Source of the DNA: Podarcis gaigeae | Taxonomy: Eukaryota | Reading direction: 5' to 3' (one strand) | Assembly (NCBI GenBank): GCA_964106915.2 | Contig: OZ066916.1 | Length of the DNA: 64,000 bases | Shown: positions 13,811 through 38,394 of the stretch, in pieces | Position numbering within the stretch: the first letter of the stretch is position 1 | Layout of the letters: the number at the start of each line of letters is the position of its first letter | Made by a program: the position numbers and the translations under genes | Notes under the pieces: model-generated | What the model was told of the DNA's origin: nothing | Seen by the model: the letters and a program-made list of their open reading frames with translations, nothing else | Database searches by the model: none

Positions 13811-16800
13811 ATGGTAGGTGGCTGGGCAGGTGAAGGCGGCTTGAGGAGGAGGAGCCTGCGTGCGCGCTCTGAGGATGACGCTCCTCCTCGCGGGGTCGCG
13901 CTGGCAGCCTCGGGAGAAGTTCTGTTGTTGTTCCTCCGGCCTCTTCCCTGCCGGGACGGGGCTGGAGACCTAAGGCCACAGTGGCCTTTTCTTAGCAGTT
14001 GTGGGGGGGGGGGGATTGAGTAGGCAGAACAGTGGGGCAGAAATGGAGGCAGATGGCACGGGCTGCATACGCGCCATACGTTTGAAGTGCATTTCTCCTC
14101 ATCTCTGGGAGCTGTAGCTTACCCTCAACATGCTACAATTCCCAGCAAAACTACACTTCACAAAAATTCCTGGGGAGATGTGCTTTAAATGCATGCCGTG
14201 TAGGCAGCCAAGGTCTCTCAAATATCACTTTTGTAATCTTGATATTTGTTTGCACAACAAACAAAGAAACATTTGTTTTGCTTTCCTTATGGGTATCCCA
14301 AGGCGTTTCGGCACCTGAGGTGAAATGCGCCACTGCCACCCTTACGATGGAGCGTAAGAGCTCTGTTTCTCCTTGAGGAGCCCTTGCAGAGTCTCACCCG
14401 CCAAGCAGCAGGGTGAGATTCCAGATCCCCTGCTCCTACCCAGCAGATAAGTTTTGCACCGGCTTCTCCTGCCACACCACCAGACGGGGAGATCTCAACC
14501 CTGCCTGGTGGCAGTGCTGGATGGCAGAACACCTTGCCTCCCCTCTTGTTGACCCAGCGGAGAGACCAGCAACAAAGCTGGTTGGTGGAACGGGTATGCT
14601 GCCCCTTGGGGGTTGCCACCTGAGGCAGCCACCTCACCCTGCCTCATGGTTGGGCCTGCTCTGGCTTTCTTACCCACCAGGCAAAAGGTATTTGGAACAC
14701 TCAGGATCTCTCCTACAAGAAGCTGAGATCTGTAAGCCCATGTCAGAGACATAAAACAAGTGCATAAATGTTGGTTGCTGCAAGTGTGTGTTTGTTAACC
14801 TAGGGATTGTCAGTTTTGAAAACCAGCAAAACTTTCCTGGGTACCACACACATACTCCATGCAGCCAAGCACACACCACAGCCTAATCTCTTGACTACAG
14901 CAGAATGCTTATTTCAAGCCAGCAAGGAAATGATATCATGCGGGTGCCAAGTGCATGTGTGTCTCCAGGCACCAGATCAGTGGGTAAGCCTATAATCCAA
15001 ACAACTTTTGACTAATTTGCTTTGCTTTTCAATTTCAGATAGTTGTAAAAGTTATTGGAAGTTTCAGTCAGAAGCGGTCCGTATAGTTAGGCAGAAAAAT
15101 TGTCAATTATGGATCATTCTTAAGTATCCTTACTTTGTTTTGCAGCCTCACAGGCGGAAGAAACCCTTCATAGAAAAGAAAAAAGCCGTAACCTTTCATT
15201 TAGTACACAGAAGCCAGAGGGACCCCTTGGCAGCAGATGACACTGCACCCCAGAGAGTTCTGTTACCTGCACAGAAGGTGGTTATAAAATACAGTGTTGT
15301 AGGAAAGTGGCTGAGCTTTTACTTTTCAGAGGATTGAGCCAGAAATTATTTCAGCCTTGAAGTTTTGGGGTTTGTAATAATGTGTAATAATTCCCTAGCA
15401 CTTATTTGCATTACAATTTTTGCATTTTGAACCATGTGGCATACATACTACACTCTGTAGTTTTCAAGGAAGTATAGTTCAAAGAAAAATCTAATTGGGC
15501 TACTTGGAGGTGAGGGAATGCTAAAATCTGTGTTCACACACTTCATAAAAAGTGTTTAGAAAGTTACTGTATCCAAAGTGCCTGCTTTCTCCCTGAAATA
15601 TTTGCTTCCTCGTAATCTATGTTCAGGGATGCAGGTGGCGCTGTGGGTTAAACCACAGAGCCTAGGACTTGCCCATCAGAAGGTCGGCGGTTCAAATCCC
15701 CACGACGGGGTGAGCTGTCCACGACGTTGCTACCCTGCTTCTGCCAACCTAGCAGTTCGAAAGCATGTCAAAAGTGCAAATAGATAAATAGGTACCGCTC
15801 CGGCAGGAAGGTAAACGGCGTTTCAGTGTGCTGCTCTGGTTCGCCAGAAGCGGCTTAGTCATGCTGGCCACATGACCCGGAAGCTGTACGCCGGCTCCCT
15901 CGGCCAATAAAGCGAGATGAGCGCCACAACCCCAGAGTCGGCCATGACTGGACCTAATGGTCAGGGGTCCCTTTACCTTTAATCTATGTTCAGCAAAAAT
16001 ACTGGGCAGATGCTTTTATTGATAAACTGCTTTGAAATGTTTCATAGGAAGTGATTCATAACTGGAATTATTACACAAATAAATAAATTTGGGACCTCTC
16101 CCTCAAAAAAAAACCTTTAGGGGGTTGATGAAAAAAGAAGAGAGGAACAGAGGAAATATGGAGTATTCTTTGATGATGATTATGACTACCTGCAACATCT
16201 CAAAGAAGCTTCTGGACCTTCTGAGCTCGTTCCATCAAGCATACCCAGTCAACAAGGCAGGATTGTTGTGACCACAGAAGGAGAGGTACACGAGGAAATT
16301 CAGCAAATTCCAGTAAGTACACAATGTACTTGTCATGGTACTCTCATAAGGATATTCAGCAAAGACGTCGTGTTTTTTTTTTAAAAAAATTAAAGGCAGG
16401 ATTGAAATTATTAAATAAAGTATTCTGAAAACTTCTAATAAATGTTGTGATGAAACATTGCGGCCGTTTATCACACCTATGTTGTTGTTTTTGAAATCTT
16501 TGAGGCTTCAGCCTATGAAACTTCCTACCTTAATACCTAATAAAGTTCTCAGGCAGGCCTTAACGAATGTTGCATTCACTATAAAACCTTTAACCACTGC
16601 CACCAAAATAAATCCTCTATGTCTTGAAGAAACCCAGGAGCCTGCTTCCTGTGACATAGACATGGGATTGACAACACAACTAGAGGCAGATGAACAAACT
16701 TGATTTTATTGTTAAGTGAATTATTTACATAAAAAAGTGTTGCATTTCAGGTGGTAGGATGCAATTTCTTAAGTGTACAGTTTGCAGTTAACCAGGGTAT

Positions 16801-19800
16801 CTGCTGCTACAGTTCCTAACATCTAAGAGGGTTTTTTGCAGCCAGATAAGCCCCCAGTAGTTTTTCCCTGGGACCCAATTTGCTTGACCTTCACACCGGG
16901 CAGCCATAAGGAGGAACTGATGCTGAGCAGCAGACTTCTTCCTATTGACTTCTAGAATAGTTCAGATGTTTGCTGAAATCCACCCTCTGGTCAAGAGCTC
17001 ATCTTGAAACCCTCTGGTTCTGGATTTTGGTGCCTACTTGAAGCTTCACCACTACCTCAGAGCATGCCTTCATGCTCTCCCCAGCTGCCAGTTCATTTCC
17101 CAGCAGTTTTCTCACAGTTTTCTCACAGACTGCCAGCATTACTTTTTCCAAGCTGAGCTCTGCTCTCCTCTAGTTGGCAGCCAGCTGACAGATTGGCCTT
17201 TTGTTCTCCCTCCAGCCAGAGCCTTCTGACTACTTGTGTCCTTGCCCCTGTCAGGGAAGCCTGACCTGTCTGTCTTCTTTCAGGGACTAGTCAGTGATTC
17301 TACATGAACAAATTCTAATGGGCAGTTGAATTTGTGGACCCCTTGATGAAAGCAAATTGCATTTTAGTCTACACCTGGTCCATCTATAAACAAAGGGAGC
17401 TTCTCCCACTAGTCATTTTCAGACAGTCATCGTGAAACCTCCCTCCTTAGCAACTGTTACTAAGGCAGCCATAAGTGTTTTGTGACCATCACAAAGTCAC
17501 AGAGCTAGGCTTCTGGTCTTTTGGGTTACATTATAACCTCAGCCACACGTTTCTCTCAGAATATAAATGTTACTAAGTATTATCATCAGTTTATTTTGTA
17601 ATCAGCCTTGCCACAAAGAACTACGCTCAAAAGCAATGTACCGTAGCAATGAGAACAAAAATGCAACTGCCTCTTTCACTGATTGATTCTGTGAATTTTG
17701 TTACAATGGACTAACATGGCTTTTTAACTACTATTGGTGTGAATAAGTCTAATAATAGTAGCTAATAACACAAATGATAAAGTTTTGTAATTTTTAAATT
17801 CAGTTTCTATCAAGCAGATTTATAGAAGCCCCTTTCAACCTATGAGATTGTAGCTGTATGTCTCTTTGGGGGCCATTTGGAAGGATTAGAGGTGTGGAGG
17901 GAAGATTTTTACCAAACACGTATCAATTAACAAGTTGGCTAGTGGTGATGGAACATACTGCCATAACATCATAGTTTGTGCATCTACAAAAAAAAGGGGG
18001 GGCATTTTCAAGAAGTTACTTATAAGCAGGATTTAGGATTCCAGCAGCCTTGCTTGTCAACTTGCACTCCAGAGAAGCCTCTGTAGAAGAAATTCTTACA
18101 GATACTAGTCCACTAAGGGGGGGGGGGAATGAACATACATGTGCTGTGTCTCCAATTTCAGAACAGGCAAATATTTTTTAAAAACAGTAATAATATTCAG
18201 TGGTTTTTGTGTCTTGAGTAATTTTTTAGGGGGGGAAATGACCTCTGTTTTGTTCTTTTTGCTTTTTAGGCCCCCACCATTAACTTGCCCTCATCAGTGT
18301 TTGCATCAGAATTTGAAGAGGATGTGGGATTGTTAAACAAAGCTGCTCCCATTTCAGGTACTAAATTTACACTGCAGTCTGGTTCATATTTACTAAGAAG
18401 ATATACTATGTTAAATGGAGGCTACTCTCTAGAAAGTGACTATCAAAGTATAAGCTTAAGCTGTCTCTTTGTCATAGCATCTATTATTACAGAATACTTT
18501 TGTTGCAGAATTTCTATATGAGCAGCAGCAGCATCACTATGTAATCTAATAGAAAATAGGAGGTGAAACTATTTTCTATGTGCTTTGGGATTGCCTAGAT
18601 CTCTTTATTCTTCATTCAAAATCAAATTAGCATCAATTATGCAGAACAGATAAATGTTTTTGCAAGATGCATTGTTCTACCATGCTGGAAGTAAGTCTTC
18701 TGGAAACAGGGAAAAGGACACAACTTTTATTTCAGTTTTGTAAATACTCAGAATAGACCCATTGAGATCATTGGACTTGTCCATTGATTTTAGTGGATGA
18801 ACTCAAAGTCTGACTTAGGACTCAGCTATACAGCTGCAAATAAAACATTTTAAGTGTGGTTTAAGTGCAATATACAATGTGACACTAGATGGCAATGGTG
18901 AGCCTTGTGGAAAATTCAATGTATTTTTTTATTTAAAAAAACCTTTAAAAAAAGCACTGTCAGAACATTTTTTATATGTGTGTTGTTTCCACCTCAAGTT
19001 GGCTATCATACTCATTCTTCTATTCACGTGTGGTGGGGAATAGGTAAAAGGTAAAAAGTCAAAGGTGACTATTGGGTGCAGCGCTCACCTTGCTTCAGGC
19101 CGAGGGAGCCGGCATTTGTCCACAGACAGCAGGGGAAAAACTCTTGTAAACTGTATGAGAATAAAGTTCTACCATAAATTACTTACCCTGAAAAGCAGGC
19201 TAGTTTTGGGTTTGTCTGTTTGTTTTTTTAAGTTGTGTACTAATAACCATTTCATCAGCTTTCTTTGTATTTTTAAAAGAATTTGGCAGCAGCCTGTTTA
19301 AATATAGCAAAATCACTTATTGAATTTTTTTAAAAAATAGTAATTTGAAAACAAAAGCAGATGCTATAACACAACTCCTCTCATAGAACACAGTAAAAAT
19401 TAATTAATCTAATTTTCCTCACCCTTTTCTAAATTAGCTCTGGGCCCCAAAAGCCTTCCCATTCAAGTGGGGGGTCTTGCAACACTTCTAAAAGGTACTC
19501 AGGTTTGAGTCTGCCATAGAAGGGGATTCTATAAAGGGAACAGCCACAATGAATGGTTTTCTATGCTTGGCTAAAGACTAGTGTTTACAGCAAACTGGCT
19601 GTTTGGCTCTGACACTTTCTGAGAAATGGCTTGTCATAACTCGTTTATAAGGTGTTATTTTATCTATCATTAGGGCCTAGGCTGGATTTTGATCCTGACA
19701 TTGTTGCGGCACTTGACGATGACTTTGATTTCGACAATCCTGATAATCTTCTTGATGATGACTTCATTTTAAGGGCTAATAATCAAGGAAGCACAGAGCA

Positions 19801-22800
19801 GGAAAAGGAAGCTTGTTGGTAATGGAATGGAAAAGTATTACTGTCCTTCGTTGCCTTTCTGTTCTTTGTTTTGTGTTTTGCCGCTGGGCAAAACGTCGCT
19901 AAGGAACTATCTTCATGCTCCTTTTCATATAGACACTTTTCAGTTTCTGAAAATCAGCACCTCATCAGCTATTTAACTGTAAAATAAGAAAAGTAATGAC
20001 CTATGACCTGGTTAGACAAGAGGTCCGAAAAGAAATGAGGTGAGGAGGAAGAGCAGCAGCCTGATAGAGATCCATCAGAAGCTCAAGTGTACCACTTTCA
20101 ATTTAGGGTAGACCTATTGAGCACTTTATTTCTTTACCAAGGAAGGCTTAAGACACTTCTCATTCTTAGGGCTTCTGGCAAAACAAACAATACATTCAGA
20201 GTTCAGCTTCATCCTCCCCCAACCACTTACATTGTTTCTCAAATCTCTGTAGCTTCTTCTCTCTATAAAGTTTGCCCAACTATCCTGTCCTCTCCTTACT
20301 GTTTCTCACAGTGGCAGTCTATCATTGCCTATGACCCTGAGGCAAATGGAAATAGAGTGCCTTCTAGAAGCAATGCTGCTGCAGCTGACTCTCTTTTCCC
20401 ACCTGTCTGCCTTGTTCTATGCTGCCAGAAGAAGCATAGGCACCCACAAGTTCTGCCCATCGTCACCTCTGACCCACCTGTGTTTACTTTCCATAGTGGC
20501 GAGGCAGTCATATATGTTTGCTGCCGGCCCCTGACAGCCTTCTAGACAATAATAATCAATTGCAGCTGCAGAGAAAACAAGTGGCTTCAACCCCCTTCCC
20601 CTCTGCTGTTGCCTTACAGCAGCCATTCCATCAAGCTATGTTTACATGTGGTTATAAAAACTGTCAGAGTTTGCTTTTCAACCTCCTTTCCCATCTCCTT
20701 TCCTTCTATGCTTTGACTTTTTATTGGAAGCCTTTCTACCTCTGTTTCAAATGCCATCCTGGGAGCCATTTTGGCTAAAGAGCAAGATAGAAATTATTTA
20801 CGACTTCTTTTTTTAAAAATGAGATAGCTGGGTTTCTTTTTCTTTTTGGCTGCTCTTCCTAGGGAGTCTGGAGATGAAGATGAATGGGAGGACGTGGAGG
20901 AAGAGGATGGAGAAGGCACCCAGAGTGATGTGGATTCGGATGGTCCTTTGTCAGATGACAGTGAGATTAAAGGAGAAATGAAAGAATTTCTTTTCATGCA
21001 AGAAGAGACCAAGAGCCGTTTCACAGAATACTCCATGACTTCTTCAGTAATGAGAAGGAATGAACAGCTGAGCCTTTTGGATGAGAGATTTGAGAAGGTG
21101 AGGTAACCTAACGGTAATGATTCTGGTGACGCTTAAAGGGTTTTTGGCAAATATTCCCCCACTCAAACTCTGATTCTGATACAGGCAGATCAAAGCCCTG
21201 TTTAAATGGCTACTTATTATTTATCCAATGATAGAAAGACTGCTAAACAATCATACACTGTAATATGTACCTTACATATTTTTGTTCAATATCGAGTAAC
21301 ATTTATTCTTAACCATAGATATGTTATTGTCAATCAGCACTGTAGCAAATAAATTTGTATTAGTTTTTACATAAAGGAGAAAGAAATTAGGAGGATGAAA
21401 ACAATTGTTTTCAAAACTCTAATTCCTCTCCCTGTGCGGTTTAGATTTGTGACTGTAGTTATATAATTAGTTCCAGATACGTTCATATTGAGTGTTGTGT
21501 TTTTTGTTTAGTTCTTTGAGCAGTTTGACGATGATGAAATTGGAGCACTGGATAATGCCGAATTGGAAGGTTTCATTCACAGTGACAGTACGCGGTTACA
21601 GGAAGTCTTGAATGACTACTACAGAGAGAAGGCAAAGAAGTACGTAGAATGTCCCAGCTGTCTGATTTCTTGGTGTGAATTAAAAGAATTTCTATAGAAC
21701 CCTTCGACATCAGGGTGATTTACAAATGTTGGACACAAGCTACAATCAAAACATTAAAAGGCCATTTAAAAAAAATGAAATTATTTTAAAAGGCTAATCA
21801 AAAGGCCATTGTGTAGCACGAAAAGGACAGTTGCATGAGCACTAGGGAAGCCTCCTGGGGAGGGGATGTTCCGAGTCCAAAGATGACGACTCACATAGAT
21901 AGCCTTAGCTCCCAGCTTCAGCTTTCCCATTTTATGCTAGGAAGGGAAGCGTCTTTGCTGGTTTAGTGTTTATGTATTCTATTTACTGATTAATTTCCAG
22001 AGACTACATTGAAAGCTGAATAATTTTTATTTAAAGGCATTGTCATGAAAAACACTATATTTCCTCTAATTGTTTGATTTGGTTGTGATTTATCTGGTTC
22101 ATGGGGGAAGAGCTCAGTTGGATCTCTTGTTTATATTCATGCTTGACTGCTGTTACCGATGATCAATTGCTATGTTAGAAGAAGAAAGCCAAAGTCTTTT
22201 AAATATATAGCTTTTGATGGCAAAATGTTTGGCTTGACGCATGTATTGATATTTACTTCATATTGACGCAAGATAATCAACATTCTCTGCCTCTAGCAGC
22301 AATTATAAAGTGTGTGTCAGATTCAGAAGAGGCAATTGTGATGTCCTGTCAAGTATCTGATTGAAGGAAAAGGAGGAGGGAATGTACTTCAGCAGGGTTT
22401 AACATTCAGTATATACATTTTATGAAAAATAAATAAATACCTTTAATTATATACAACTGGGTATGCCGCAAACAACATAGGCTGTATTAAGAGAAAAATA
22501 TTTAGCTTTTTTGCAGTTGGAATGCCTGCTGATACTGTGCAAAAAAAATGTATTTTATTGTGATGCACAATTAAGGGGAACTCCTTTGCCAAATTACACC
22601 TTTCAAAAACATAATGTATATCCACCATTTTCTGCCATACCAGTTGTTGCCAGATTGCAACTTGCGTTATCCCTGGCCATTGACCATGCTGGCTGATGAA
22701 TTCTGGTGTCCAAACAAAGTGTGGAGAGCATAAATTAGCCACCGCTGCTCTAAGGGATACTGATCAATGGAAAAGCAGCTAGAGGCAGTTTTAAATTTAA

Positions 22801-25489
22801 ATTTAAAATGTTTTTAATATGCCTTCATGAATCTTTTATTTTTCTCCAAAAGCTGTGTCAAACATGAAGGTCTCGAAATCAAAGAAGATTCAAAGCTGCT
22901 CCCCAGTGAGGAAGAAGATGAGACAGAAGAAATTGCACCTTTGGTTATTGAAGAACCCAAAGAAAAGTGGGATTGCGAATCCATTCTGAGTTAGTGTCTA
23001 GAGCTACATGTTTTTTCCCCCCAATGGCTAAAAAATGCAGGGATTATACTGCTGCTTTTGTGTGTCAAACTAGCACACACAGTAACTATTAACGAAAAAG
23101 GCCAATGAATAAGAAATTATTAATAGTTTGGTCTATAACAAAAGTTTTAAAATCATAACTGGGGCAGTAACTGATTGATTACTCAAACTTGTGTCTCTTT
23201 TTTTCTCCTTAAGGTACCTATTCAAACTTATACAATCATCCAAAACTTATTGAGGTTCCACAAAAGGTAAATTGAAGTTTCTATTTTATATCATTTTAAG
23301 AATTTTGACCAATAATAGGCACATCCAAGAATTTCAGCATGCCTAGTGTGATTTTTTTGCTTTAAAGGAAAAATAAAATAGCAAGCCTTACCATCTTGAA
23401 AATGGCTTTTGAAATTAAAAGCCATGTGGCATGGAAAATGATTGTCTCTGGGTTGTGTAGATGATTGTCTCTGGGTCATAACTGGTTGTGTAGTTCTTTG
23501 GTTCCCTATCCCAGTAGCATGTGTGGTCATAAGCTTACATGTTTTGGGATAATTGTAAGTGTTCTTCAGACCTGTTTGTCATTACTCAAAAGTGATCCAG
23601 CATAGACTGGTTGGTGTCTTTTCTCTCTTCCTTTCAGCAGTATTAAATATTTTTGCATTTATTGCTCTCACAGAAAACAAGTTCTTAGTAACTTGTTTTA
23701 CCTGGAAATCGGAAGCTAAAAAATTATCACTATTCTCTGCTTTAAATACTAAACATGCATGCACAGTTTCAAGTAATTTCTATGTAATCTGCCAAAGATT
23801 TTCAACAAGTATAAGGAAGCCATTTAATAAATATTGCAACAGAACAAGAATACATTTTTATTATTATTTAATCATAGCCAAACAGACATTCCTGCCCCCC
23901 AAGCAAGGTTATAAATTCTGCTTTGACTGAGCATTGATTTGACACTTAGGGCCTATAGGTTCTGCTGCAATGAACTTTGGACTGGGCTGATTGGGGAAGA
24001 AAGCCACAGTGTTATTGCTGGCTTATACATGACATGAAAAAGTATAGCAAGGGGTGGGGGGGAAAAACCACATTTGTTAGTTTGTTTGTATGTATTTACT
24101 TTTCAGCCCAAACCGATTGAAGTGTCAAGTAAGACAGGAATCCCTCTGGGTGTTTTGCCCGGAAGAGGACTTACAGCTAAGCAGGCCGAACGCATGGAAA
24201 TGATTAACGACAGTGACCTGCCGAGAGTAGCCACACAACCACGATGCAAAAACGAGAGTAAAGAAGATCGGAAAGCTAGAAAACAAGCTATTAAAGAAGA
24301 AAGAAAGGTAGGCTTCTTTCACTTTTTTCAGCAAATACTGAAATGTGCATTTGTCTGATTGTCACTTTCACTAAAGTAGTTGGTCAGTTTTAACTTGAAC
24401 CAGAGCCATTTACATCCTAACTTTTGAACATGAACCCAGGTAACTTCACTGTTTCCAGGTTGTCTCCCATAGATAAGCACCAACAGACTGAGACCATATT
24501 AGGTGTATGCAGGCGTATTTCTGCAGCATATATGTCTTTTGACTTCTGTCCTTTTACAATATGCTAAATTGTTGTTATGAAATAAAGGGTGCAGAGGGCA
24601 ATGTACACTGGGCACCACAGTGACACTGGTCCTGATCAGAAGGTGATCACCTACTCAGAAGGGAGTAGGTAAATGTAACTTAATCAGAAGGTGACACTAT
24701 TGTGCTCTATATTAGATCCTTATCAATTGTTAATCTTTATCTGATTGGGAAAAGATGCTGCTTTGTTCTAATGGTGTTTCTCTGTATGGGTTTAGGAGGG
24801 GGCAGAAGTTCCTTTGTTCCATTTCAATTGCTAATACCAGTATTGGATTTATGCTAATTTTTTACAGATCTTTGCTCATAGCAGTTGGCTGCTTGCAAGA
24901 ATCTTTGTATTCTTTGTGACCAGTACAATAAATTTAAAAGTGCAGCCCAGAAAGAACCCAAAAACTGGCATGTATATAGTTGAAAGGATTGGTAAATCGG
25001 TCACTTCATTCTGAACTCTCTACATGTTACTTGTGATAACAATAGAAATAAACTAGCTTTTTAAATGAGATGCGTTTCTGCAGCATTTGTAGCATGGAAT
25101 AGCCAATGTGGTGCCCTCCAAAGCTTGCGGAGGGTGCATTTGGGTTGTATCCAATGCTGCCTGTGCACAAACAGAATGGATTTCTGTTCTGGAAGGGACT
25201 TCGCGTGCCTCCTTCTCCCTGCACATCCCTCAAAAACTGTTTGGGAGGGTTGGAGGGTCTTCCACAGATGACTGGAGAGCATGCGAGGGGCTGCAGAGGC
25301 TGCATACTATTTTATTAAGGAAACTGCTTTGGGAACTTCTTTGTTGAAATGTAAATAAATGGTTTATCTGTGTAGGAACGCAGAATGGAGAAGAAAGCAA
25401 ACAGATTGGCCTTCAAGCAAGAGAAGACGAGGCAAGAGAAAGAGCTGCTCAACCTGAAACAGAATATTCAAGGGCTCAAGCTGTCATAA
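13811..25489 (+). CDS. LTV1: LTV1 ribosome biogenesis factor (exons 13811-13813, 15146-15277, 16121-16312, 18270-18357, 19674-19818, 20863-21097, 21512-21639, 22853-22989, 23214-23266, 24107-24307, 25376-25489; 1428 nt, 475 aa)
   Basis: The translation reads M|PHRRKKPFIEKKKAVTFHLVHRSQRDPLAADD...YGVFFDDDYDYLQHLKE...LPSSVFASEFEEDVGLLNKAAP..GPRLDFDPDIVAALDDDFDF...ETKSRFTEYSMTSSVMRRNEQL..LDERFEKFFEQFDDDEIGALD...EKWDCESILSTYSNLYNHPKLI...ERRMEKKANRLAFKQEK...QGLKLS*. All introns are GT-AG with consistent phases. Confidence 0.97.
15627..15979 (+). mobile_element. Sauria SINE, full length
   Basis: tRNA-like head (GGTGGCGCTGTGGG A-box, GGTTCAAATCC B-box), ACCTTT tail, and 14-bp TSD TAATCTATGTTCAG (15613-15626, 15980-15993). 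Confidence 0.9.
19043..19130 (-). mobile_element. Sauria SINE 3' fragment
   Basis: Reverse complement of the tail and 3' body seen in the 15627 and 31999 copies (GGTAAAAGGTAAA...GCGCTCA..TTGCTTCAGGCCGAGGGAGCCGGC). Confidence 0.65.
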
Positions 25490-25666
25490 TGAAAAACAAT
25501 TGCTTCTTGTTAAGGACACTCAGCTACCATACTCTTTGCTGACACCTTTTGGAACTTCTGTCTTCAGCCTGACAACAGCAAAGTTTGAGATAATGACTTT
25601 TTGAATTCAGATATAGTCACTTATCGGCATCTGGTTACATCCAAAATAATTTTTGGGTACCACTGA

Positions 25667-26155: not shown

Positions 26156-27189
26156 TGGAAGCACCTTTTTCATATGCAGACTTTCTGTCTAATTCTTTTT
26201 CTAACTTGATAAAGGGCTATTTATTGGCATGTAGCAGCATATACATTGAGCATGATCTTCTTCCAGCCTCTGTATTCTGCTGCCTCTGAACATGAAAATT
26301 CTATCTAGTGCTCATGGTTATACATTACTAGCCCAGCCTCCCAGCATTTCCCTCAAAGAACCTTTCCTGAGCATCTTGTGGTTCCTACAACACATTATCA
26401 CTGTCCACCTAAGGAGGGACGGGGTTAGTGGTAAACAGTTCACCTTGGCAAATCAAACTGCTAACTTCAAGCTTGCCTCTATTAGTTTTAACTACTTTAG
26501 AAGTTTCTGTAGCTGAAGAAGCAACTGCCTTATTGAACATCTATTAAGTCAAGGTGTCCCATTACTAACACTCACTGATAACTGTCTTGTAGAGGAAACA
26601 AATGTATTCAGAGTAGCTTAACTTCTTTTTTCATGTGCAGCATTGCATGATGGAGGGGTTGCATGTGTCATAATTGTTTTAACTGTCAGCCAATGACATT
26701 TAACTTGGGCTTTTACAAGTAAAGGAGCTAGATAAGCAAGAGTAAACTACCTGGTGCACCTGTCTCCCTGAAAAGTATTAAAGGCAGAATTTGATATCAC
26801 TGCACTATGAGATGAGTGTGATTCCTGGGAATAAAGCAGGAGCTGTAGGTATGTAATATCCTCAATCTTTACTTTGAGCTGTAAGTAACTTTTATCAGTG
26901 AATGGTTTTGCACAGGCTCTCTGCTCTTCATTACATTTAAGTAAATGTTTGTCCGTACTGGCTGATATTTGCAGAAGCTATTCATAGAAATATGTCAAAC
27001 ATGTTGAACAGACCACAGTCATGGAAGCTACCCTCATTCATGCAGTGAGTATGATAAGTAATACATCACTCAAAGTATTAACCTTGTAACATCCTTCTGG
27101 AAGCACCTTTTTCATATGCAGACTTTCTGTCTAATTCTTTTTCTAACTTAATAAAGGGCTATTTATTGGCATGTAGCAGCATATACATT
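26156..27189 (+). repeat. 92-bp spaced direct repeat (26156-26247 and 27098-27189)
   Basis: TGGAAGCACCTTTTTCATATGCAGAC...GCAGCATATACATT occurs twice, 942 bp apart, with 1 mismatch. Confidence 0.92.
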
Positions 27190-30100
27190 AAAAACAATAT
27201 TAGTTGGATTAATATCACGAGAAGAGGGGAAGCACAATTGGAAGAGAAAAAATGAGATTGTGTGGATTTCTTGGATGTTAGAAAACCCTGGATAAGTAAG
27301 TAATAACTTGTATTCTTCCATTTCACACAGATGCTAGCAGCCAGAATTTGCTTTCTTGTGAAATCTGTGGAAGACATTTTACACAGGATGCACTGGTAAA
27401 AACAAGACAATTAACCACTGAATATATTTAGTGACATAAAAGCAACCGTAAGATAATTGACCAAGCAAGAATGGAAATGACTCTGTTAATGAATGAATTC
27501 AGTAGGCTGGTTCACAACTGAAGTTAACCTTACAGCAGAAGCTTTCATAGACTGCAGCTTTTAAGGAATTCAAAGCAGAAATAGCAACAGGCAAGTACTT
27601 GGAAGTACTTGTTAGTGTTTACAGTAAACATCCCTCATCCCCGCCTTTTATTCAATGCAAAGAGAAGAAAAATCAGTAATAAATGGAAGCTCTCCGCATA
27701 CCTCACGTATCTTAGAAACAATTCCCAATGTTTCCTTCACAACATTTTTACATATGTTAATGTGTTTCTCAGTCCCTTAGCTCTGGGCAGTTCGGACCAA
27801 TTCAAGTTCATGTACTCAGGAATCCTTTTGAATATTGGATGACCATGCTACATTTTCACTTCACATTTAAACTACCTTTAATTGCCACTCTTAGCAGCTG
27901 CCACCACATGAATATCAGTAAACACAAGAGCTGGGTCCCCTCCCCCATTTACTTATTTTTAAATTTACATTTATGTATCATCTTTCCTGGGTCTCCCCAC
28001 TCCATTCTGTCCTCACAACCACCTTCTGAAGTAGGTTAGACTGAGGAGACACCGTGAACTTCATGACTGAGTAGGGATTTGAACCTGGGCCTCCTGGGTA
28101 CTTAGGTGTTCATATGCCTTCCTTCACCGCTTAGCTAACATGCAATTAGCAAGGGGAATTCAGAGTTACAAGTTTTAAAAGTCCCTTGTTCAGGCCATTT
28201 TAAAGTGTCCAGGGTGGTTTATACATTATCCTCAAACTAGACTTTTGCCAAGCCACGCAGCCTTTACAAAGGCATTACATTGGACCCAGCATAAAAACCA
28301 AACATGAAAAACCGATGCTGCTTTTTCTAAAAAAAAAAGTTTTTAAAATCCCTGTTTACAAGATTATATCCTTACAGGTGCAACAGCCTGAGCCAATCAA
28401 AGGTGAACAAGCCACTTGACTTGGTTGGCACTACAGCCAAATAATTACACCTCTGCTAGGGAAAACATGCACACCTACCTTACTAATATTTAACTTGAGA
28501 AAATGAGAAGTATCCCAGATTAGTCAAATTAGGTACCCACATTTATTCCATGTCCAGGATAGATTTCAGACACAGGTAATTAGATATACATACAAGTTAG
28601 GCATCATCTCCTTTGCTGACTCCCAAAAGCTTGGGCACACTACACCAAGGCTTGACTTAATCATGCCTTTCATTTTTGGAACCCTACATTTAGAGCTCAG
28701 TATAACATTATTTTGATCAACCCTTACTTGGCAGACCTTTCTCTGTCTCTCTCCATCTTAGGCACGACATGAACCAATATGCAGAAAAGTCTTCAACAAA
28801 AAGCGCAAGCCATTTAATTCCTTGAAACAGCGACTGCAGGGAACTGACATTCCAACAGTAAAGAGGAAGCCACCCCCGAAGGTATTTTTGAATTAGGCAT
28901 GCAACTTGACTCAAATATCTCAGTTCAGGGATGTTTCACAAGAGTTGGGGTGACTTATTTGCCAGACATAAGGACTGTGCTAATACATAGGGTTGAAATG
29001 TCCTGTAAAAGTTACTGTAGCACTGAGTCATAGATTAACCCTCTGACTCTGCTTCCCTTACATTGCCTACTAGGAAGTAAGTGCATATTTCTTCTTCTTC
29101 CTCTTTACAAGCCCTCCAAGACTTCTTCATTCACTATGAAACTGTGCTTTTGGAACCATCCATTTGGAGCTCATATTAACATCTAGTTTAATTGCTATTT
29201 CCTGGTTCAGAAATAAAGATCCTAAGAATACATTATGCTTCCCTCAAAGAAGAGGTGAGCATTGTGATTCCATGATTCTTCAACTCAAGATTAAGAAATT
29301 CATCTACTTGCCCTTACCCACCAGGCTCTCTAATCTCTTTCCATCTATACACAGGCTGCCATACCCTCCCTCTTCAAATCTTCCACCAAGCCCAGGCTTT
29401 GGCTGCCACCTAAATCCACCACGCTCCTACCCCAAAACCCATCCTTCCTACCCACTCATTTGTTAGAGGTGACACTGTCATAGTTATCTCCCATCTTCTG
29501 CACCTGGCACAAGAAAACCAAGGAACTGTATTACCTGTGTTTAATAGATAATTAAACTTTATTATTGCTTGTTATTGTTTCATCATTATAACGCATTTAA
29601 CATCTCTTGAAATTCTCTTTTCAAAAACAGTTTAGGACTATGTATCTATTAATGCACCCTCAGACTGAAAAATGTGATTCAAGTATTTCCTTTTCAGAGC
29701 CAACCAGAGAGAAAATCTCATTGGAGACAACAACATGAGGACTTCATTAATGCAATCCGATCAGCCAAACTTGCCACTATAGCTATGAAAGAAGGCCGCC
29801 CTCTGCCTCCGCCACCGCCTCCAACCATTAATCCAGGTTATTTACTTGCATTGAAGCTGTTCATCCTTGTTTAAAAATAGAGGGTTGGGTCCAGGCTCAC
29901 AGAGGGTCCAAAGATTCAGAGAAATCTCCTGCAGAGAGGAAGAAATATTCACTTCCTTCACATGTGGGAACATCCCGTGGATACAATTCTGCCCAAGGGC
30001 AGTCTGGGTCTAACTCAGAGAGTCATTTGAACAATTAACTAAAACAGAGCTAGTGGATAGTACTGGACTTCCACTCAAGAGAATAATTTTCAACTCGGCT

Positions 30101-33100
30101 ACTGTTTCAGTGGGAAGTCTCTCTCAACCAAATTTCTTCATCTGCAAGATAACAATCATAAGCCTGATTCACACATCATTCTAATTCAAAGCATGACTTA
30201 GCATGAATGTGCAGGCTACTGGAGAGATTGTGTCTGCTTTGCTCCCCGCCCCCCGCCCCCGAGTTGTTTTGCTACTGTGCAATGCTGAGCTAAACCATAG
30301 TTTGGCTCAGCATGTTGTCCCAGCCTGGGCTTATTTTAGCTTTCTCCAGCATAACCACAAGCTGTAACCAAGCTGTCCTGTGGTTTATAACTCATGGTTT
30401 GTCCAGGAGAGTTAAGCCATGAACCTGGATTCAGATGACAAAGGGAAACTGGCTCATTGTGGCATATTCACATTATTTATATATTTTACGTTACAGATAA
30501 GTAGCCGTGTTGGTCTGCCATAGTCAAAACAAAAAAAATTCCTTCCAGTAGCACCTTAAAGACCAATTAAGTTAGTTCTTGGTATGAGCTTTCGTGTGCA
30601 TGCACACTTCTTCAGATACACTGAAACAGAAGTTACCAGACCCTTCTATATAGTGAGAAGGTGGGGAGGGGTATTACTCAGAAGGGTGGTGGGAATGGCT
30701 GATTGGCAGATAGCTGTGATGAGCCTGTTGACGACTCTTAACGACTGCAATAGGTCTTACAGGAAAAAGCAAGGGGTGAGAAGGTGAAAAATGGCTTTGT
30801 CATGTATAATGAGATAAGAATCCAATGTCTTTGTTCAGACCAGGTCTCTCCATGGTTTTAAGTTTGGTGATAAGTTGCAATTCAGCAGCTTCTCTTTCCA
30901 GTCTATTTCTGAAATTCCTTTGTAGTAAAACAGCTACTTTGAGATCTTGTATAGAATGTCCTGGGAGATTGAAGTGTTCTCCTACTGGTTTCTGTCTTGT
31001 GATTCCTGATGTCGGACACAAATACCCCTCCCCACCTTCTCACTATATAGAAGGGTCTGGTAACTTCTGTTTCAGTGTATCTGAAGAAGTGTGCATGCAC
31101 ACGAAAGCTCATACCAAGAACTAACTTAGTTGGTCTTTAAGGTGCTACTGGAAGGAATTTTTTTTGTTTTTTTATATATATTTTATAACAGTGATGTTGT
31201 CTCCCAGGTACTATATAAATTGCTTTTATAGCTCTCGTTCCTTTGTTATATTCAGATTATATTCAGTGTCCTTACTGCATGAGGTTTAATGAGGCTGCAG
31301 CAGAAAGGCACATCAATTTCTGTAAAGAACAAGCAGCCAGGCGTGCATTTGCTCCAGGTCAGAAAGGATCCAAAGCACCCCCTGTAAGTAATTTTATTTT
31401 ATTCAAGCCATTAGTCACATTTTTGTCCCCTCCTTCTTCCAGGGGCTATATAGAATAATAAAAACAAGGAGGAGCGCTGCCAAATGTATCTCCGTTAATT
31501 CTTTCACTTTCCCATGAATTCTGGAGAAGGGTTGCGGTTCAGTACTGGAGCACCTGCTTTGCATGCAGAAGGTCCCACATTCATTCCCTGGCATGTACAT
31601 CTGGAACTGGGAATATCACCTCCCTGAAACCCTAGAAAGCCTCTGCCAATCAGTGTAGGCAGTAATGAGTCATGGTCCATGCCTAAGCATATATTATATT
31701 ATGGTCAATGAATACTTGTTCATTGCAACATTATTTATTTTCTTCTAATTTTGCCACTTCACTCTAAAGGTTCTAGAGTACTCTTCTCCCATTAAAAGCT
31801 GAATGCCAAATGTTTCCAAATGTCACATTTTTTTGAGCTATAGAAAAGACTGATGGATGAATAAACCAGTCAAACCAGAATTTGCAAACAAAAAAAAACT
31901 CATAGGAAAATGTGCAGAAATATTTTAACCAACAGACTGGAAGGTTTTCACCTTTTTAAAAAATACATAATTTTTTTAGTCCCTGTAGGGTTGCTATAGG
32001 GGACGTGGGTGGCACTTTGGTCTAAACCCTGAGCCTCTCGGGCTTGCCAAATGGAAGGTCAGTGGTTCAAATCCCCACAACAGTGAGCTCCCATTGCTGT
32101 GTTCCAACTTTTGCCAACCTACAAGTTTGAAAACATACCAGTGCAAGTAGATGAATAGGTACCGCTGCGGCAGGAAAGTAAACGGCGTTTCTGTGCGCTC
32201 TGGCTTCCATCACTGTTATGTTGCACCAGAAGTGGTTTAGTCATGGTGGCCAAATGACCTGGAAAGTTGTCTGGACAAACATCAGCTCCCTTGGCCTGAA
32301 GCGAGATGAGCGTCACACCCATCACCTTTGACTGGACTTAACTGTCCAGGGGTCCTTTACCTGCCATAAAGCAATTTTTCTAAGGTTTTTTTCTCCTCCA
32401 GTTTGACTTGTTGGAAATTATGAGAGGTTTTGGGGAGAATCTAAGTACTCTAGCTAATACAGTGGTATCTCGGGTTAAGTACTTAATTCGTTCTGGAGGT
32501 CCGTTCTTAACCTGAAACTGTTCTTAACCTGAAGCACCACTTTAGCTAATGGGGCCTCCCGCTGCCGCCACGCCACCAGAGCACTATTTCTGTTCTCACC
32601 TTGAAGCAAAGTTCTTAACCCGAGGTACTATTTCTGGATTAGCGGAGTCTGTAACCTGAAACGTATGTAACCTCAAGTGTATGTAACCTGAGGTACCGCT
32701 GTACACAACTTCAGTTAGTGAAGGGCTAATGTGGTGTAGTGGATAGTGTTGGATCAGAGAAATGTTGGTTTGAATTCTGCTGCCCCACACTGCAGAATAT
32801 TTGGGTAGTCAGCCACTCTTTACCTAAACATCCTAGGATTGTTGAGAGGATAAACATATGATAGTCCCAAAGCTCCTTAAGCTTTTTGGATACAAATGTG
32901 ATAAATCAACTGTACTGCATAATGAATGTATGCTAAAACGTTCTTTATATATTTACTGCGTATTTTCCAGGGCAAACAAGCAACTCCCAAAAAAGAACCA
33001 ACCCTAACAAGTGCTGTGGGAACACTGCTTCAGAACAAGACACAGGAAGGCACTGATCCAAGCCAAGTAGTAATAGGTAAGTAGCAAAAATAACGTTGAA

Positions 33101-34809
33101 TTAATGCTCCAAAATATTTGAGGGTCACAGAAATTATTCCTTTCAACTGCACCTCCCAAACTTTAATGTTAAACCATTTCATTGCATTTCACATTCATTA
33201 GCTAGTATGCCCTATTGTGAAAACCACCCTGTAGAAGAGATTCATTTTTGCTGCTGTTGCATATTGCATGGATGCCTTTACTGTTCTGGTTAAGCCAATT
33301 TTGTAACCGTTAGAACTACTCTAACAGTATCATAGGGCTTAGTAGGTGAGTTTTCTGTAGTTTACGATGGCTTTATAGACTACTTTTGAACTAATAATTT
33401 ATTAATTGATATGCAATATAATTTGCTTTTTGGATTTTTTATGTAAACTATCTAGGGAGCCTATTTTGGGGCTCAAAGGGCTAAGTAGGATAGAAATAAT
33501 TCTAGAAACAGTGGAAGGGATATAGCATTTGGTTTGAAGTGAAATCAATATTCAAAATTATTCTGCTATATACTCTTGCCTTTGGTTTGTATTTTAAAAC
33601 TGAGTTATGGAAAAGCCCACAAACTTAGACCAAGCAAACCTTAGCATTGTGATCTTAAGACTGGAAATAATAACAGTCATGCACTTTCAAAATGCAATGA
33701 AAGTTTAATGCTTAAAGCTTCAATCCTATACTCACCTGGAAGCAAGCCCCACTGAACTCAGTGGAACTTACTTCTGAGCAAACATGTATAGCAGGGATGT
33801 CCAACACATCAATCACGATCTACTGGTCGATCCCTGTGAGGTTTTGGTAGATCGCTGGCCCCCTTCTGGCCCTGGGCCCCGCTCCCCGCATAGGCCTCTA
33901 TTGTTACAGAAGGGAAGCCAGAATTTAGAAACCAGCCGTAAGGTTAGTGGCTGCTTCTGTTCCTCCCTCAGAAGAGCTGCAAAAAAGTCCCTAACCCTCC
34001 CTCCCAAAAAACGGGGGTAGATCACTGCCAGATTTTAATTCTGAAAGTAGATTGTAGTCTCTTGGGAGTTGGCCACCCCTGATGTAAAGGAATGCACTGT
34101 AATTCTACAAATGAAATCAGTGCTTGACTTTTTCTGGACTATGCCCAGAATGTATTTTTGCAAAGGATTTTAAAGAGGTATAATTGATTTGTTATTTTTA
34201 AGGGCGTGCTGCAGAAACCTCTGGTGGAACGCTGCAGAAAAAAGCACCTGGAATTCCCTCTGGGAAGGAGCCTGGGTAAGAAACAAAGTAACTACATCCC
34301 TGGGTTTTTACATGAGTGATCCAATCTTAATTCTCTTAAAAGCCATGAAAAACAGTTGAGAAACAGACCAGTCAAGGAAAAATGACAATTCCAAAGAACT
34401 TTTTATATAGAATAAATAAGCTTGTAAAATGTGGAAATACAAAACTTACTGCAAGTGCCAGATACCTTAATGTAAACATGACATTTTGCTATTTGTATCC
34501 ATTTATGTAACTCTCATTTCTTCAGCATATGGCCTACAATATCCATTTTAGTAAACAAAATCATACAAAATAACCATGTATTGCTATACCAGCATCTGTA
34601 TCAGGGGTATAAAAATAGATCAGTTTCTCAAGGTTTTCTAGCTGAACTATTTCAAAGTGGTCTTGATCTGTACCTTGAAACAGTCTTAACAGAGTCCACC
34701 TTCAGAGAAAAGAGAAACTTATACCATTGTATATGATCTGCTTTATTTCACAGCCCTCCTAAATTAATGTTTTACTGCTTTTAGGGTTCCAGTACAGGGC
34801 AAAAAATAA
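26812..34809 (+). CDS. ZC2HC1B: Zinc finger C2HC-type containing 1B (exons 26812-26848, 27331-27395, 28762-28881, 29698-29836, 31256-31383, 32971-33076, 34203-34275, 34785-34809; about 230 aa)
   Basis: The translation contains CEICGRHFTQDALARHEPICRKVFNKKRKPFNSLKQRLQGTDIPTV, KSHWRQQHEDFINAIRSAK, EGRPLPPPPPPTINPDYIQCPYCMRFNEAAAERHINFCKEQ and PKKEPTLTSAVGTLLQN. Introns are GT-AG and phase-consistent. The first and last two exons rest mainly on splice signals and phase, so they are less certain. Confidence 0.9.
30582..30619 (-). ncRNA. Minimal hammerhead ribozyme motif (PLE family A, minus copy)
   Basis: Exact reverse complement of 31077-31114. Confidence 0.75.
31077..31114 (+). ncRNA. Minimal hammerhead ribozyme motif (PLE family A)
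   Basis: GUAU-CUGAAGA-A-GUGUGC-AU-GCACAC-GAAA-GCUC-AUAC. It has the core boxes CUGANGA and GAAA, a 6-bp stem II, a 4-bp stem I, and palindromic AGCU in place of stem III. Confidence 0.75.
31999..32362 (+). mobile_element. Sauria SINE (older copy)
   Basis: Same head, body and GGGGTCCTTTACCT tail as the 15627 copy, but more diverged. Confidence 0.85.
32460..32701. mobile_element. Tc1/mariner-pogo (Tigger-like) MITE
   Basis: TIRs CAGTGGTATCTCGGGTTA / TAACCTGAGGTACCGCTG with TA flanks. Same family as 53718-53940. Confidence 0.88.
33792..34081. mobile_element. hAT MITE
   Basis: TIRs CAGGGATGTCCAAC / GTTGGCCACCCCTG, TSD 7/8 (ATGTATAG / ATGTAAAG), and GATCTAC/GTAGATC subterminal motifs. Confidence 0.8.
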
Positions 34810-34956
34810 GGGTGGCATGTTCCCCCTTGCCTCTGAATAAGAGCACTTACTTTTTACAGCCCAGAAGTCCAGCAAACTAGTCCACCGATAAACATGTATC
34901 CTGTGTCTCATGAAACCTGTATGACTTTACGAACTATGCTTTACGAACTATGCAAT

Positions 34957-34962
34957 AATAAA
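34957..34962 (+). terminator. ZC2HC1B: ZC2HC1B poly(A) signal
   Basis: AATAAA about 150 nt after the predicted stop. Confidence 0.55.
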
Positions 34963-35620
34963 AGAAACATGATCAAATTCCTGGGAGTTGACTCAATATT
35001 TGCAGCTGGCATATACACAATAGCAGCAAATGCTTATGGACGATGGAGTGATATGCACACACACATGCTGTAATTTTAAGTTCAAGCCAAGTGTTTCCTA
35101 TTTGTTCACCATTACATCCCCCTCCATTTTATTTAAGTATTTCCCCCCTCATTATATTGGTTAGCTACATGTAATCACTGGGTTGTGCTACTAATGAAAG
35201 AAAAATAATCAACAGACTAATCAAACCTAGGTGACCTTATGTGATGGATGTGGAAAATATGTAATACATATGTTGTGCAGCCTCCAGTCATTTTAATGGT
35301 AATTAAAAGAGGACTGCATGAAGCAGAGTAACAGCAACCCTCAACTAAAAGTATGGGGGGCCATTGCTTCTGTACATGTCCCCAAATATTTGAGAGCAAT
35401 TTCGCACTTAACATATAACATTTTGAAATGCAGGTATTTAGTTTGCCCTGTGCAGTCCATTACAGATGAATCCCATGCAGGTCTACTCACAAGCAAGTCC
35501 CATTGACTTGAATGGGCCTCACTGGGTTCAACGGGACTTGCTCAAAAATACAGCCTGACCGACGTCTCCTGTATAAATTAACGAATCACCACAAAACAGA
35601 TTAGAAGGCGGAGTGTGGAA

Positions 35621-35626
35621 TTTATT
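35621..35626 (-). terminator. SF3B5: SF3B5 poly(A) signal
   Basis: TTTATT on + (AATAAA on -) about 400 nt past the stop, followed on the minus strand by a GU-rich tract (TCTGTTTTGTGGTG). Confidence 0.7.
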
Positions 35627-36024
35627 AGAGAGTTGCCTAAATTCCTCCAAAAAAAGTTACAAAATCTAGAGTGAGGCGGGGGAGGGGACGCGTCGCTTTC
35701 AGGCCTCTTCCAAGAAATTCACGCCGCCTCCGAGCAAGGAGAACCACCTGCCTCAGTCTCTCGCGATGGACGGGCTTTTCACAGTTCGCGGCAGAATTGG
35801 GGGAAGTTCACAGCCGCGCTCTCCGAAGGCGCCTGGGACTCGAAAGGAAGTTGGCCCCGGGAGCGCAACAAGGGGGAGGGGGGCAGGATTTGTTCCAGAG
35901 AAGGCGGCCTCAGGCGAAGGAAGAAGCCGCGTCCCGTCGGCCCTCCTCGTCGCGGCGCTTCCCAAATTTCTCTCGCCCCGGCTGCCCTTTCCCGCCCCTT
36001 CTCTCCCGCGGGGCGCCAGGCGGC

Positions 36025-36285
36025 TCAGGCTTCGTCGGGCTTGTCGACGGGCGGCCCGCACGGCTGCAGCATCTTCTCCATGAGGTTGAAGCGGACGCGG
36101 GCTTTGCTCTCGTTCTCGGCGATGGCGAAGTAGTTGAGCAAGTCGAAGTGGCCCATGTAGGAGCAGTACGAGTCCCGGTGCTGGTTCACCAGCCACTCCC
36201 ACTTGGTGGTGTCCGCGTGGCCCGTCCCGATGTACTTGGACTGCAGGTGCTCCAACTGGCTATGGATCGTGTAGCGGTCCGTCAT
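36025..36285 (-). CDS. SF3B5: Splicing factor 3B subunit 5 (SF3b10), single exon, 86 aa
   Basis: MTDRYTIHSQLEHLQSKYIGTGHADTTKWEWLVNQHRDSYCSYMGHFDLLNYFAIAENESKARVRFNLMEKMLQPCGPPVDKPDEA with a strong Kozak context (GCCGCCATG). Confidence 0.99.
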   Translation of the reverse strand: MTDRYTIHSQLEHLQSKYIGTGHADTTKWEWLVNQHRDSYCSYMGHFDLLNYFAIAENESKARVRFNLMEKMLQPCGPPVDKPDEA

Positions 36286-37762: not shown

Positions 37763-37924
37763 TTTCGTAGATTTTCACGGGTACAGGAATGCAGGTTTTG
37801 GTGTCCTCGGGTGTCTTCCCGTGTAAAAGTTGGGGTGTCTAGGCGATGACGAGTGAGACCTCGTCGAAACGTCGCCTAGACACCCCAACTTTTACACGGG
37901 AAGACACCCGAGGACACCAAAACC

Positions 37925-37929
<5 letters not shown>
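37761..37929 (-). mobile_element. Miniature Penelope-like inverted-repeat insertion (family B) in a (TA)n run
   Basis: 58-bp perfect inverted arms 37789-37846 / 37872-37929, a 28-nt one-sided tail 37761-37788, and a loop holding the 3' part of the hammerhead. The sequence matches the ends of the 58971-60046 element, and (TA)n lies on both flanks. Confidence 0.85.
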
Positions 37930-37962
<33 letters not shown>

Positions 37963-38394
37963 TATATATATGAGTTTTCTAGTTTCTAGGATGTTCCTGA
38001 TTCAGAAACCAATCAACCCAAAGTCAAGAAAATACGGGGACAACAGTTTTAAAACAGATGCAGTAGCCATTTTATGTGATTCCAAACACCCAATGGCAGA
38101 CATTTAGTGACTGGCGCCCACGGCACTTCTTTAAAATTGCAAATGTGACCACTGGCCTTTCAAGTTTAGACACCCCTGCTATACTGGTATTTTAGAACAT
38201 TTCACATAGCGATGTTTTCAAATTATTTAAGCTAATAAAACTTTCCAAGATAACTGATAATGCAACTCTTACACCTGTTTACTCAGAAACAAGTCCTACT
38301 GAGTTCAATGGGATTTAATACAGTGTGTATGGGTTGGATTGCAGTTTCAGAAAGTTCCAGGCTTTCAGGTTAACCCACTAAATACCAAGCTGTG

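Follow-up and report, generated by a model that had tools for sequence, protein, structure and literature searches.

The present comparisons support a model by which PLAGL1 was lost from squamate genomes, rather than moved within them, most probably through a single ancestral segmental deletion. Four major squamate clades lack PLAGL1 at its locus, whereas turtles and birds have it there, and among the matches listed the PLAGL1 clade contains no squamate protein. The proposed deletion would have run from just past the 3'UTR of ZC2HC1B to just past that of SF3B5, removing the whole of PLAGL1, and would date from the common stem of all living squamates, later than their divergence from turtles and archosaurs and earlier than the divergence of crown squamates, possibly even earlier than the split from tuatara. 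ZC2HC1B and SF3B5, with stop codons and poly(A) signals preserved, now lie tail to tail, 0.8-3 kb apart, and squamates retain the paralogue PLAGL2. In mammals, PLAGL1 (ZAC1) is a tumour suppressor and regulator of embryonic growth, imprinted at human 6q24 and a hub of the imprinted gene network, and its over-expression leads to transient neonatal diabetes; the imprinting is a mammalian feature.

The ZC2HC1B-SF3B5 interval in Podarcis

The window, by which is meant the whole 64-kb stretch of DNA analysed here, contains no N letter over its entire length. LTV1, the upstream neighbour of ZC2HC1B, is marked by exons on the plus strand at 15138..25494, the span of blastn blocks conserved with bird, turtle, gecko and skink LTV1, and the matching gene in the compared loci is annotated with the Pfam domain LTV. 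The coding region of ZC2HC1B (26812..34809, plus strand) comprises eight exons, located by tblastn with the Podarcis raffonei protein (P0185) and from exon translations: exons 1-4 at 26812-26847, 27330-27401, 28762-28875 and 29689-29844, exons 5-7 at 31240-31383, 32971-33081 and 34202-34276, and a last exon at 34786-34809, read from its translation, which closes with a TAA stop codon at 34807-34809. The C-terminus of the Podarcis raffonei protein, ...GKEPGVPVQGKK, is the same as that read from the window, the last seven residues (VPVQGKK) coming from the final exon. The name of the gene is taken from named matches to one exon (31255-31383); as a single query, this exon retrieved proteins named ZC2HC1B in geckos, tegu, snakes, turtles, birds and mammals. 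C2HC fingers (PF13913), best matches bearing the name ZC2HC1B and the adjoining LTV1 are all in keeping with this identity, and the exons are conserved in the snake, gecko and skink loci. In lacertid annotations the ZC2HC1B product has 224, 229, 231 or 234 aa, with the coding sequence ending at two places: in some models the exon at 34202-34276 (...GKEPG) is the final one, and others continue into the short exon that follows (VPVQGKK). The two ends may be either alternative 3' ends or annotation noise.

The gene that lies downstream of ZC2HC1B and convergent to it in the window is SF3B5, not PLAGL1. Its coding sequence is a single exon on the minus strand (36025..36285) encoding 86 aa, with a Pfam SF3b10 domain (PF07189, E 2e-40) at residues 3-79; the protein clusters with vertebrate SF3B5 and is identical in five lacertid assemblies. 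The stop codons of ZC2HC1B (plus strand) and SF3B5 (minus strand) are 1215 bp apart. A putative AATAAA poly(A) signal for ZC2HC1B is found on the plus strand at 34957..34962, starting 148 nt past the stop codon, and one for SF3B5 on the minus strand at 35621..35626 (TTTATT on the plus strand), starting about 400 nt past the stop codon. Both are conserved in six of six lacertid sequences and, judging from their position and conservation, both are likely to be used. The spacing of about 660 bp between convergent signals at 34957 and 35621, as given in the initial annotation of this DNA, proved accurate (664 bp, start to start). The collapsed interval, 34810..36024 and assigned to neither strand, is thus made up of two 3'UTRs separated by about 630 bp of intergenic DNA, and it contains no remnant of PLAGL1.

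The same annotation had described PLAGL1 as missing with all neighbours intact, and had seen no C2H2 zinc-finger exon, PLAGL1-like terminal exon or assembly gap; this description holds, as LTV1, ZC2HC1B and SF3B5 are all in place and the window is free of N. No canonical C2H2 finger occurs in any of its six reading frames, and no long terminal exon ending in ...LPHFHHAF[RK] is present in it. Searches by tblastn of turtle (full-length), alligator, bird and shark PLAGL1 against the window gave no match at E<=10, whereas the full-length turtle protein gave matches of E=0 in the owl, chicken and turtle loci. An Rfam scan of 34810-36024 returned nothing, and no DNA similarity was found between the turtle PLAGL1 locus and the window. 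Alternatively, PLAGL1 might remain at the site in a form too diverged to be recognised, a reading that could at most appeal to the general fast evolution of squamate genes. However, the squamate interval is 0.84-3 kb long and consists mostly of two 3'UTRs, whereas the coding sequence of the outgroup gene takes up about 2.3 kb over six or more exons, and the interval holds neither a finger-bearing open reading frame nor a tblastn match at E<=10, so that this reading is exceedingly improbable.

Beyond SF3B5, at 37790-37994, the window carries a hairpin-forming element with sub-threshold Rfam matches to several unrelated miRNA precursor families, the best being MIR5084 (71 bits against a gathering score of 110). 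Short palindromic or MITE-like repeats typically give such a pattern.

The junction across squamates and the locus in turtles and birds

The same arrangement recurs throughout the squamates sampled. Five chromosome-scale lacertid assemblies match the window at 91-95% identity over 20 kb around SF3B5; two of them, including that of Podarcis raffonei, are the closest, at about 95%. In each of the five, SF3B5 is followed by a convergent zf-C2HC_2 gene and then by LTV1; the stop-to-stop interval measures 1203-1265 bp without N and is collinear with that of the window over its whole length, at 92-97% identity and with no indel of 25 bp or more. The corresponding interval is 2981 and 2993 bp in two Crotalus assemblies, 1573 bp in the gecko Eublepharis macularius and 843 bp in the skink Tiliqua scincoides, in each case without N. 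In Protobothrops mucrosquamatus it measures 3020 bp without N on one contig (L010) and 6351 bp on another (L009), where it is gapped by 1142 N. Each of these two contigs of Protobothrops (GCA_001527695.3) carries SF3B5 followed by the last exon of ZC2HC1B, and the pair probably represents haplotigs or the duplicated end of a scaffold. None of the squamate intervals at these loci contains a finger motif or a PLAGL1 tblastn match.

The window and ten other squamate assemblies all have intact LTV1, ZC2HC1B and SF3B5 genes in their ancestral orientation, and the tail-to-tail junction of ZC2HC1B and SF3B5 is common to Gekkota, Scincoidea, Lacertoidea (Lacertidae) and Serpentes (Crotalinae). The occurrence of the same collapsed junction in other lacertids, pit vipers, gecko and skink indicates that it is squamate-wide and not a misassembly. 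An artefact in which the PLAGL1 segment was dropped or collapsed during assembly is accordingly a negligible prospect, as the junction is gap-free in ten independent assemblies of ten squamate genomes and the five lacertid sequences are collinear with the window over the entire interval. The comparison across squamates that the initial annotation had proposed, as made here for gecko, skink, lacertids and pit vipers, returned the same junction in every group. That annotation had assigned the event to "this squamate lineage"; the absence of PLAGL1 stands, but its restriction does not, gecko, skink, lacertids and pit vipers being alike. As the junction is shared by Gekkota, Scincoidea, Lacertidae and Crotalinae, the event dates to the squamate stem or earlier.

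That a single event was involved is a matter of parsimony, because no intergenic sequence can be aligned between squamate families. Several independent deletions in separate squamate lineages could be imagined on the same ground, given that the interval varies from 0.84 to 3 kb and holds no alignable sequence between families, and the gene may be prone to loss, as frogs and teleosts likewise seem to lack PLAGL1 among the matches listed. However, neutral DNA is not expected to remain alignable after some 200 million years, all four sampled clades, including Gekkota, share the tail-to-tail junction and have kept the 3' ends of both flanking genes, and one event is far more parsimonious than several. 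Repeated deletion is thus very unlikely, and one ancestral deletion remains the preferred reading.

In turtles and birds, the locus resembles that of squamates in that LTV1 is followed by ZC2HC1B, and PLAGL1 is then found convergent to ZC2HC1B; the locus of turtles, crocodilians and birds differs from that of squamates, where PLAGL1 is absent and SF3B5 occupies its place, tail to tail with ZC2HC1B. PLAGL1 is present at this site in four outgroups (chicken, barn owl, Chelonia mydas and Mauremys mutica), in which a gene of 775-786 aa lies convergent to ZC2HC1B and 4.5-8.9 kb beyond it; the distances are 4.5, 6.3 and 8.2 kb in chicken, barn owl and green turtle, respectively (776-786 aa). The terminal exon of this gene (chicken L014:23412-24575 and Chelonia L013:42262-43563, both on the minus strand) contains a zinc-finger block and a C-terminus reading LPHFHHAFK/R, with LPHFHHAFK in chicken, and the matching database proteins are named PLAGL1. 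From these sequence features the convergent gene next to ZC2HC1B is unmistakably PLAGL1. The initial annotation had given the human order as kept in birds too, and on the ZC2HC1B side this is borne out by chicken and barn owl. Birds have been said to have no PLAGL1 orthologue (Biol Open 2012; PMC3575645), a claim that no longer holds, as the chicken and barn owl assemblies have PLAGL1 beside ZC2HC1B.

The Mauremys locus gives a scale for the deletion. There the PLAGL1 coding sequence spans 50,151 bp (L017:10001-60151), with ZC2HC1B 8.9 kb beyond its stop codon, a placement that an alignment to the Chelonia locus confirms. The 10 kb upstream of Mauremys PLAGL1 contain no called gene, no ZC2HC1B lies within 10 kb of turtle SF3B5, and the 10 kb downstream of turtle SF3B5 (L006) have no overlap with those preceding the PLAGL1 coding start in Mauremys (L017). 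The human order puts SF3B5 beyond PLAGL1, and on this basis SF3B5 is presumably the next gene in sauropsids as well. The stretch in Mauremys thus comprises 8.9 kb, the 50 kb span of the PLAGL1 coding sequence and more than 10 kb further, against 0.84-3.0 kb without N in squamates. Measured on the turtle locus, the deleted segment would amount to at least 59 kb (8.9 kb plus 50 kb) and probably to more than 70 kb.

PLAGL1 elsewhere in squamate genomes

If PLAGL1 had been translocated, it would survive elsewhere in squamate genomes, unannotated or under another name. Two protein queries bear on this scenario: the turtle PLAGL1 terminal exon (433 aa, with lengths of 238-758 aa admitted), for which the best 120 of 453 matches were considered, and full-length Macrochelys PLAGL1 (732 aa, with lengths of 403-1281 aa admitted), for which the best 120 of 1094 were considered. 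PLAGL1 of turtles, alligator, birds, salamanders, platypus, marsupials, eutherians and sharks is among the listed matches, and no squamate or tuatara PLAGL1 is among the best 120 in either case, even though squamates are well represented in the same protein collection, as is seen for ZC2HC1B and PLAGL2. In an IQ-TREE tree the PLAGL1, PLAG1 and PLAGL2 clades are supported at 99/98, 100/98 and 100/98, respectively, and mammalian, sauropsid and shark PLAGL1 form one clade, so that the mammalian gene is the ortholog of the sauropsid and shark gene. Four squamate proteins occur among the listed matches (Anolis sagrei, Pantherophis, Phrynocephalus and Phrynosoma), and all four fall inside amniote PLAGL2 with support of 100/100; a phylogenetic separation of PLAG1 and PLAGL2 matches, also suggested by the initial annotation, thus assigned all four squamate proteins to PLAGL2. 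The unnamed Logan matches are bird-like or mammal-like PLAGL1, or else PLAG1 or PLAGL2.

As these lists hold the best 120 matches per query, a very divergent squamate orthologue scoring below the paralogues would escape them. However, PLAGL1 orthologues as distant as those of sharks outscore the paralogues, and of the many annotated squamates in the collection none has a protein in the PLAGL1 clade as listed. A translocated copy hidden by its base composition is likewise disfavoured, as the PLAGL1 exons of the outgroups have an ordinary GC content (38-50%); PLAGL1 is for the same reason not a hidden or hard-to-assemble GC-rich gene. In this respect the case differs from that of the "missing" GC-rich genes of birds, which likewise seemed absent from the annotations of a whole clade but were hidden by assembly problems, whereas the squamate locus is gap-free in long-read chromosome-scale assemblies. 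Translocation is therefore unlikely. Where deletion and translocation had initially been left side by side, loss is now favoured, as none of the squamate proteins among the matches listed belongs to the PLAGL1 clade, and PLAGL1 would appear to be missing from squamate genomes as a whole.

Tuatara, whose ZC2HC1B is known from UniRef, is absent from the PLAGL1 protein lists as well; this absence hints at an older, lepidosaur-wide loss but may equally reflect an annotation gap. As a separate observation, no frog or teleost protein is in the PLAGL1 clade among the listed matches, and among amphibians only salamanders have PLAGL1 there; vertebrate lineages other than squamates may thus have lost the gene on their own.

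Gene losses confined to one lineage and caused by segmental deletion are already known, and PLAGL1 adds to that catalogue in squamates. A recent survey reports 53 genes lost in squamates, including IL34, WNT2 and SSTR4, by segmental deletion (Salve, Sonal & Vijay, BMC Biol 2026; PMC13005343). The losses described there resemble that of PLAGL1 in that the flanks are conserved, the intergenic distance is collapsed squamate-wide, and the gene is kept in turtle, alligator and chicken, but the main text of that study does not have PLAGL1 among its 53 genes. Its pipeline required an intact Xenopus tropicalis orthologue, as the study describes it, and PLAGL1 would probably have been filtered out at this step, as the only Xenopus match listed here is PLAG1 (a Xenopus tropicalis "hypothetical protein", P0367). 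A literature search found no report on the status of PLAGL1 in squamates.

The PR/SET domain and the nature of the apparently lost gene

The loss adds a well-known developmental regulator to the genes that squamates have lost by segmental deletion. An order of more than 11,000 species, many of them viviparous and placental, apparently develops without PLAGL1, which bears on whether the gene is indispensable outside mammals and on which paralogue or pathway may stand in for it, as well as on how growth control in placental squamates compares with that in mammals.

The form of the gene outside mammals also changes the assumption as to what was lost. Mammalian PLAGL1 has about 460 aa and no PR/SET domain, whereas the sauropsid, shark and amphioxus homologues carry one; the sauropsid outgroup protein, of about 775 aa, combines a PR/SET domain with seven C2H2 fingers. 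An N-terminal PR domain, ahead of the PLAG-type fingers, is found in turtle, alligator, bird and shark PLAGL1 and in the amphioxus homologue (Pfam PRDM2_PR, 4e-27 to 2e-38, mostly with an additional SET match; proteins P0407, P0410, P0411, P0329 and P0415), and it is absent from mammalian and salamander PLAGL1, from PLAG1 and from PLAGL2. Given this domain in non-mammalian PLAGL1, the gene lost by squamates was a PRDM-like protein. The PLAG family may descend from a PRDM-type gene, and a literature search for PLAG1 or PLAGL1 together with a PR domain or PRDM returned nothing on the point.

A broader scenario, for and against which the balance is about even, can be built on this domain. In it, squamates, and perhaps all lepidosaurs, would have deleted an ancient PR/SET zinc-finger protein that belongs, cryptically, to the PRDM kind. 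Its conservation would extend from echinoderms and amphioxus to sharks and on to turtles, crocodilians and birds, and mammalian PLAGL1, PLAG1 and PLAGL2 would be N-terminally truncated derivatives of it. PLAGL1 would have been lost independently in squamates and possibly in frogs and teleosts, and its "essential" role in a growth network would be a mammalian speciality. The PR/SET domain also raises the question of how mammalian PLAGL1 originated. The PLAGL1 loci with a PR domain lie at L014:23412-28900 in chicken and L017:10001-60151 in Mauremys, and precomputed Pfam annotation gives a PR domain to the echinoderm and hemichordate homologues too.
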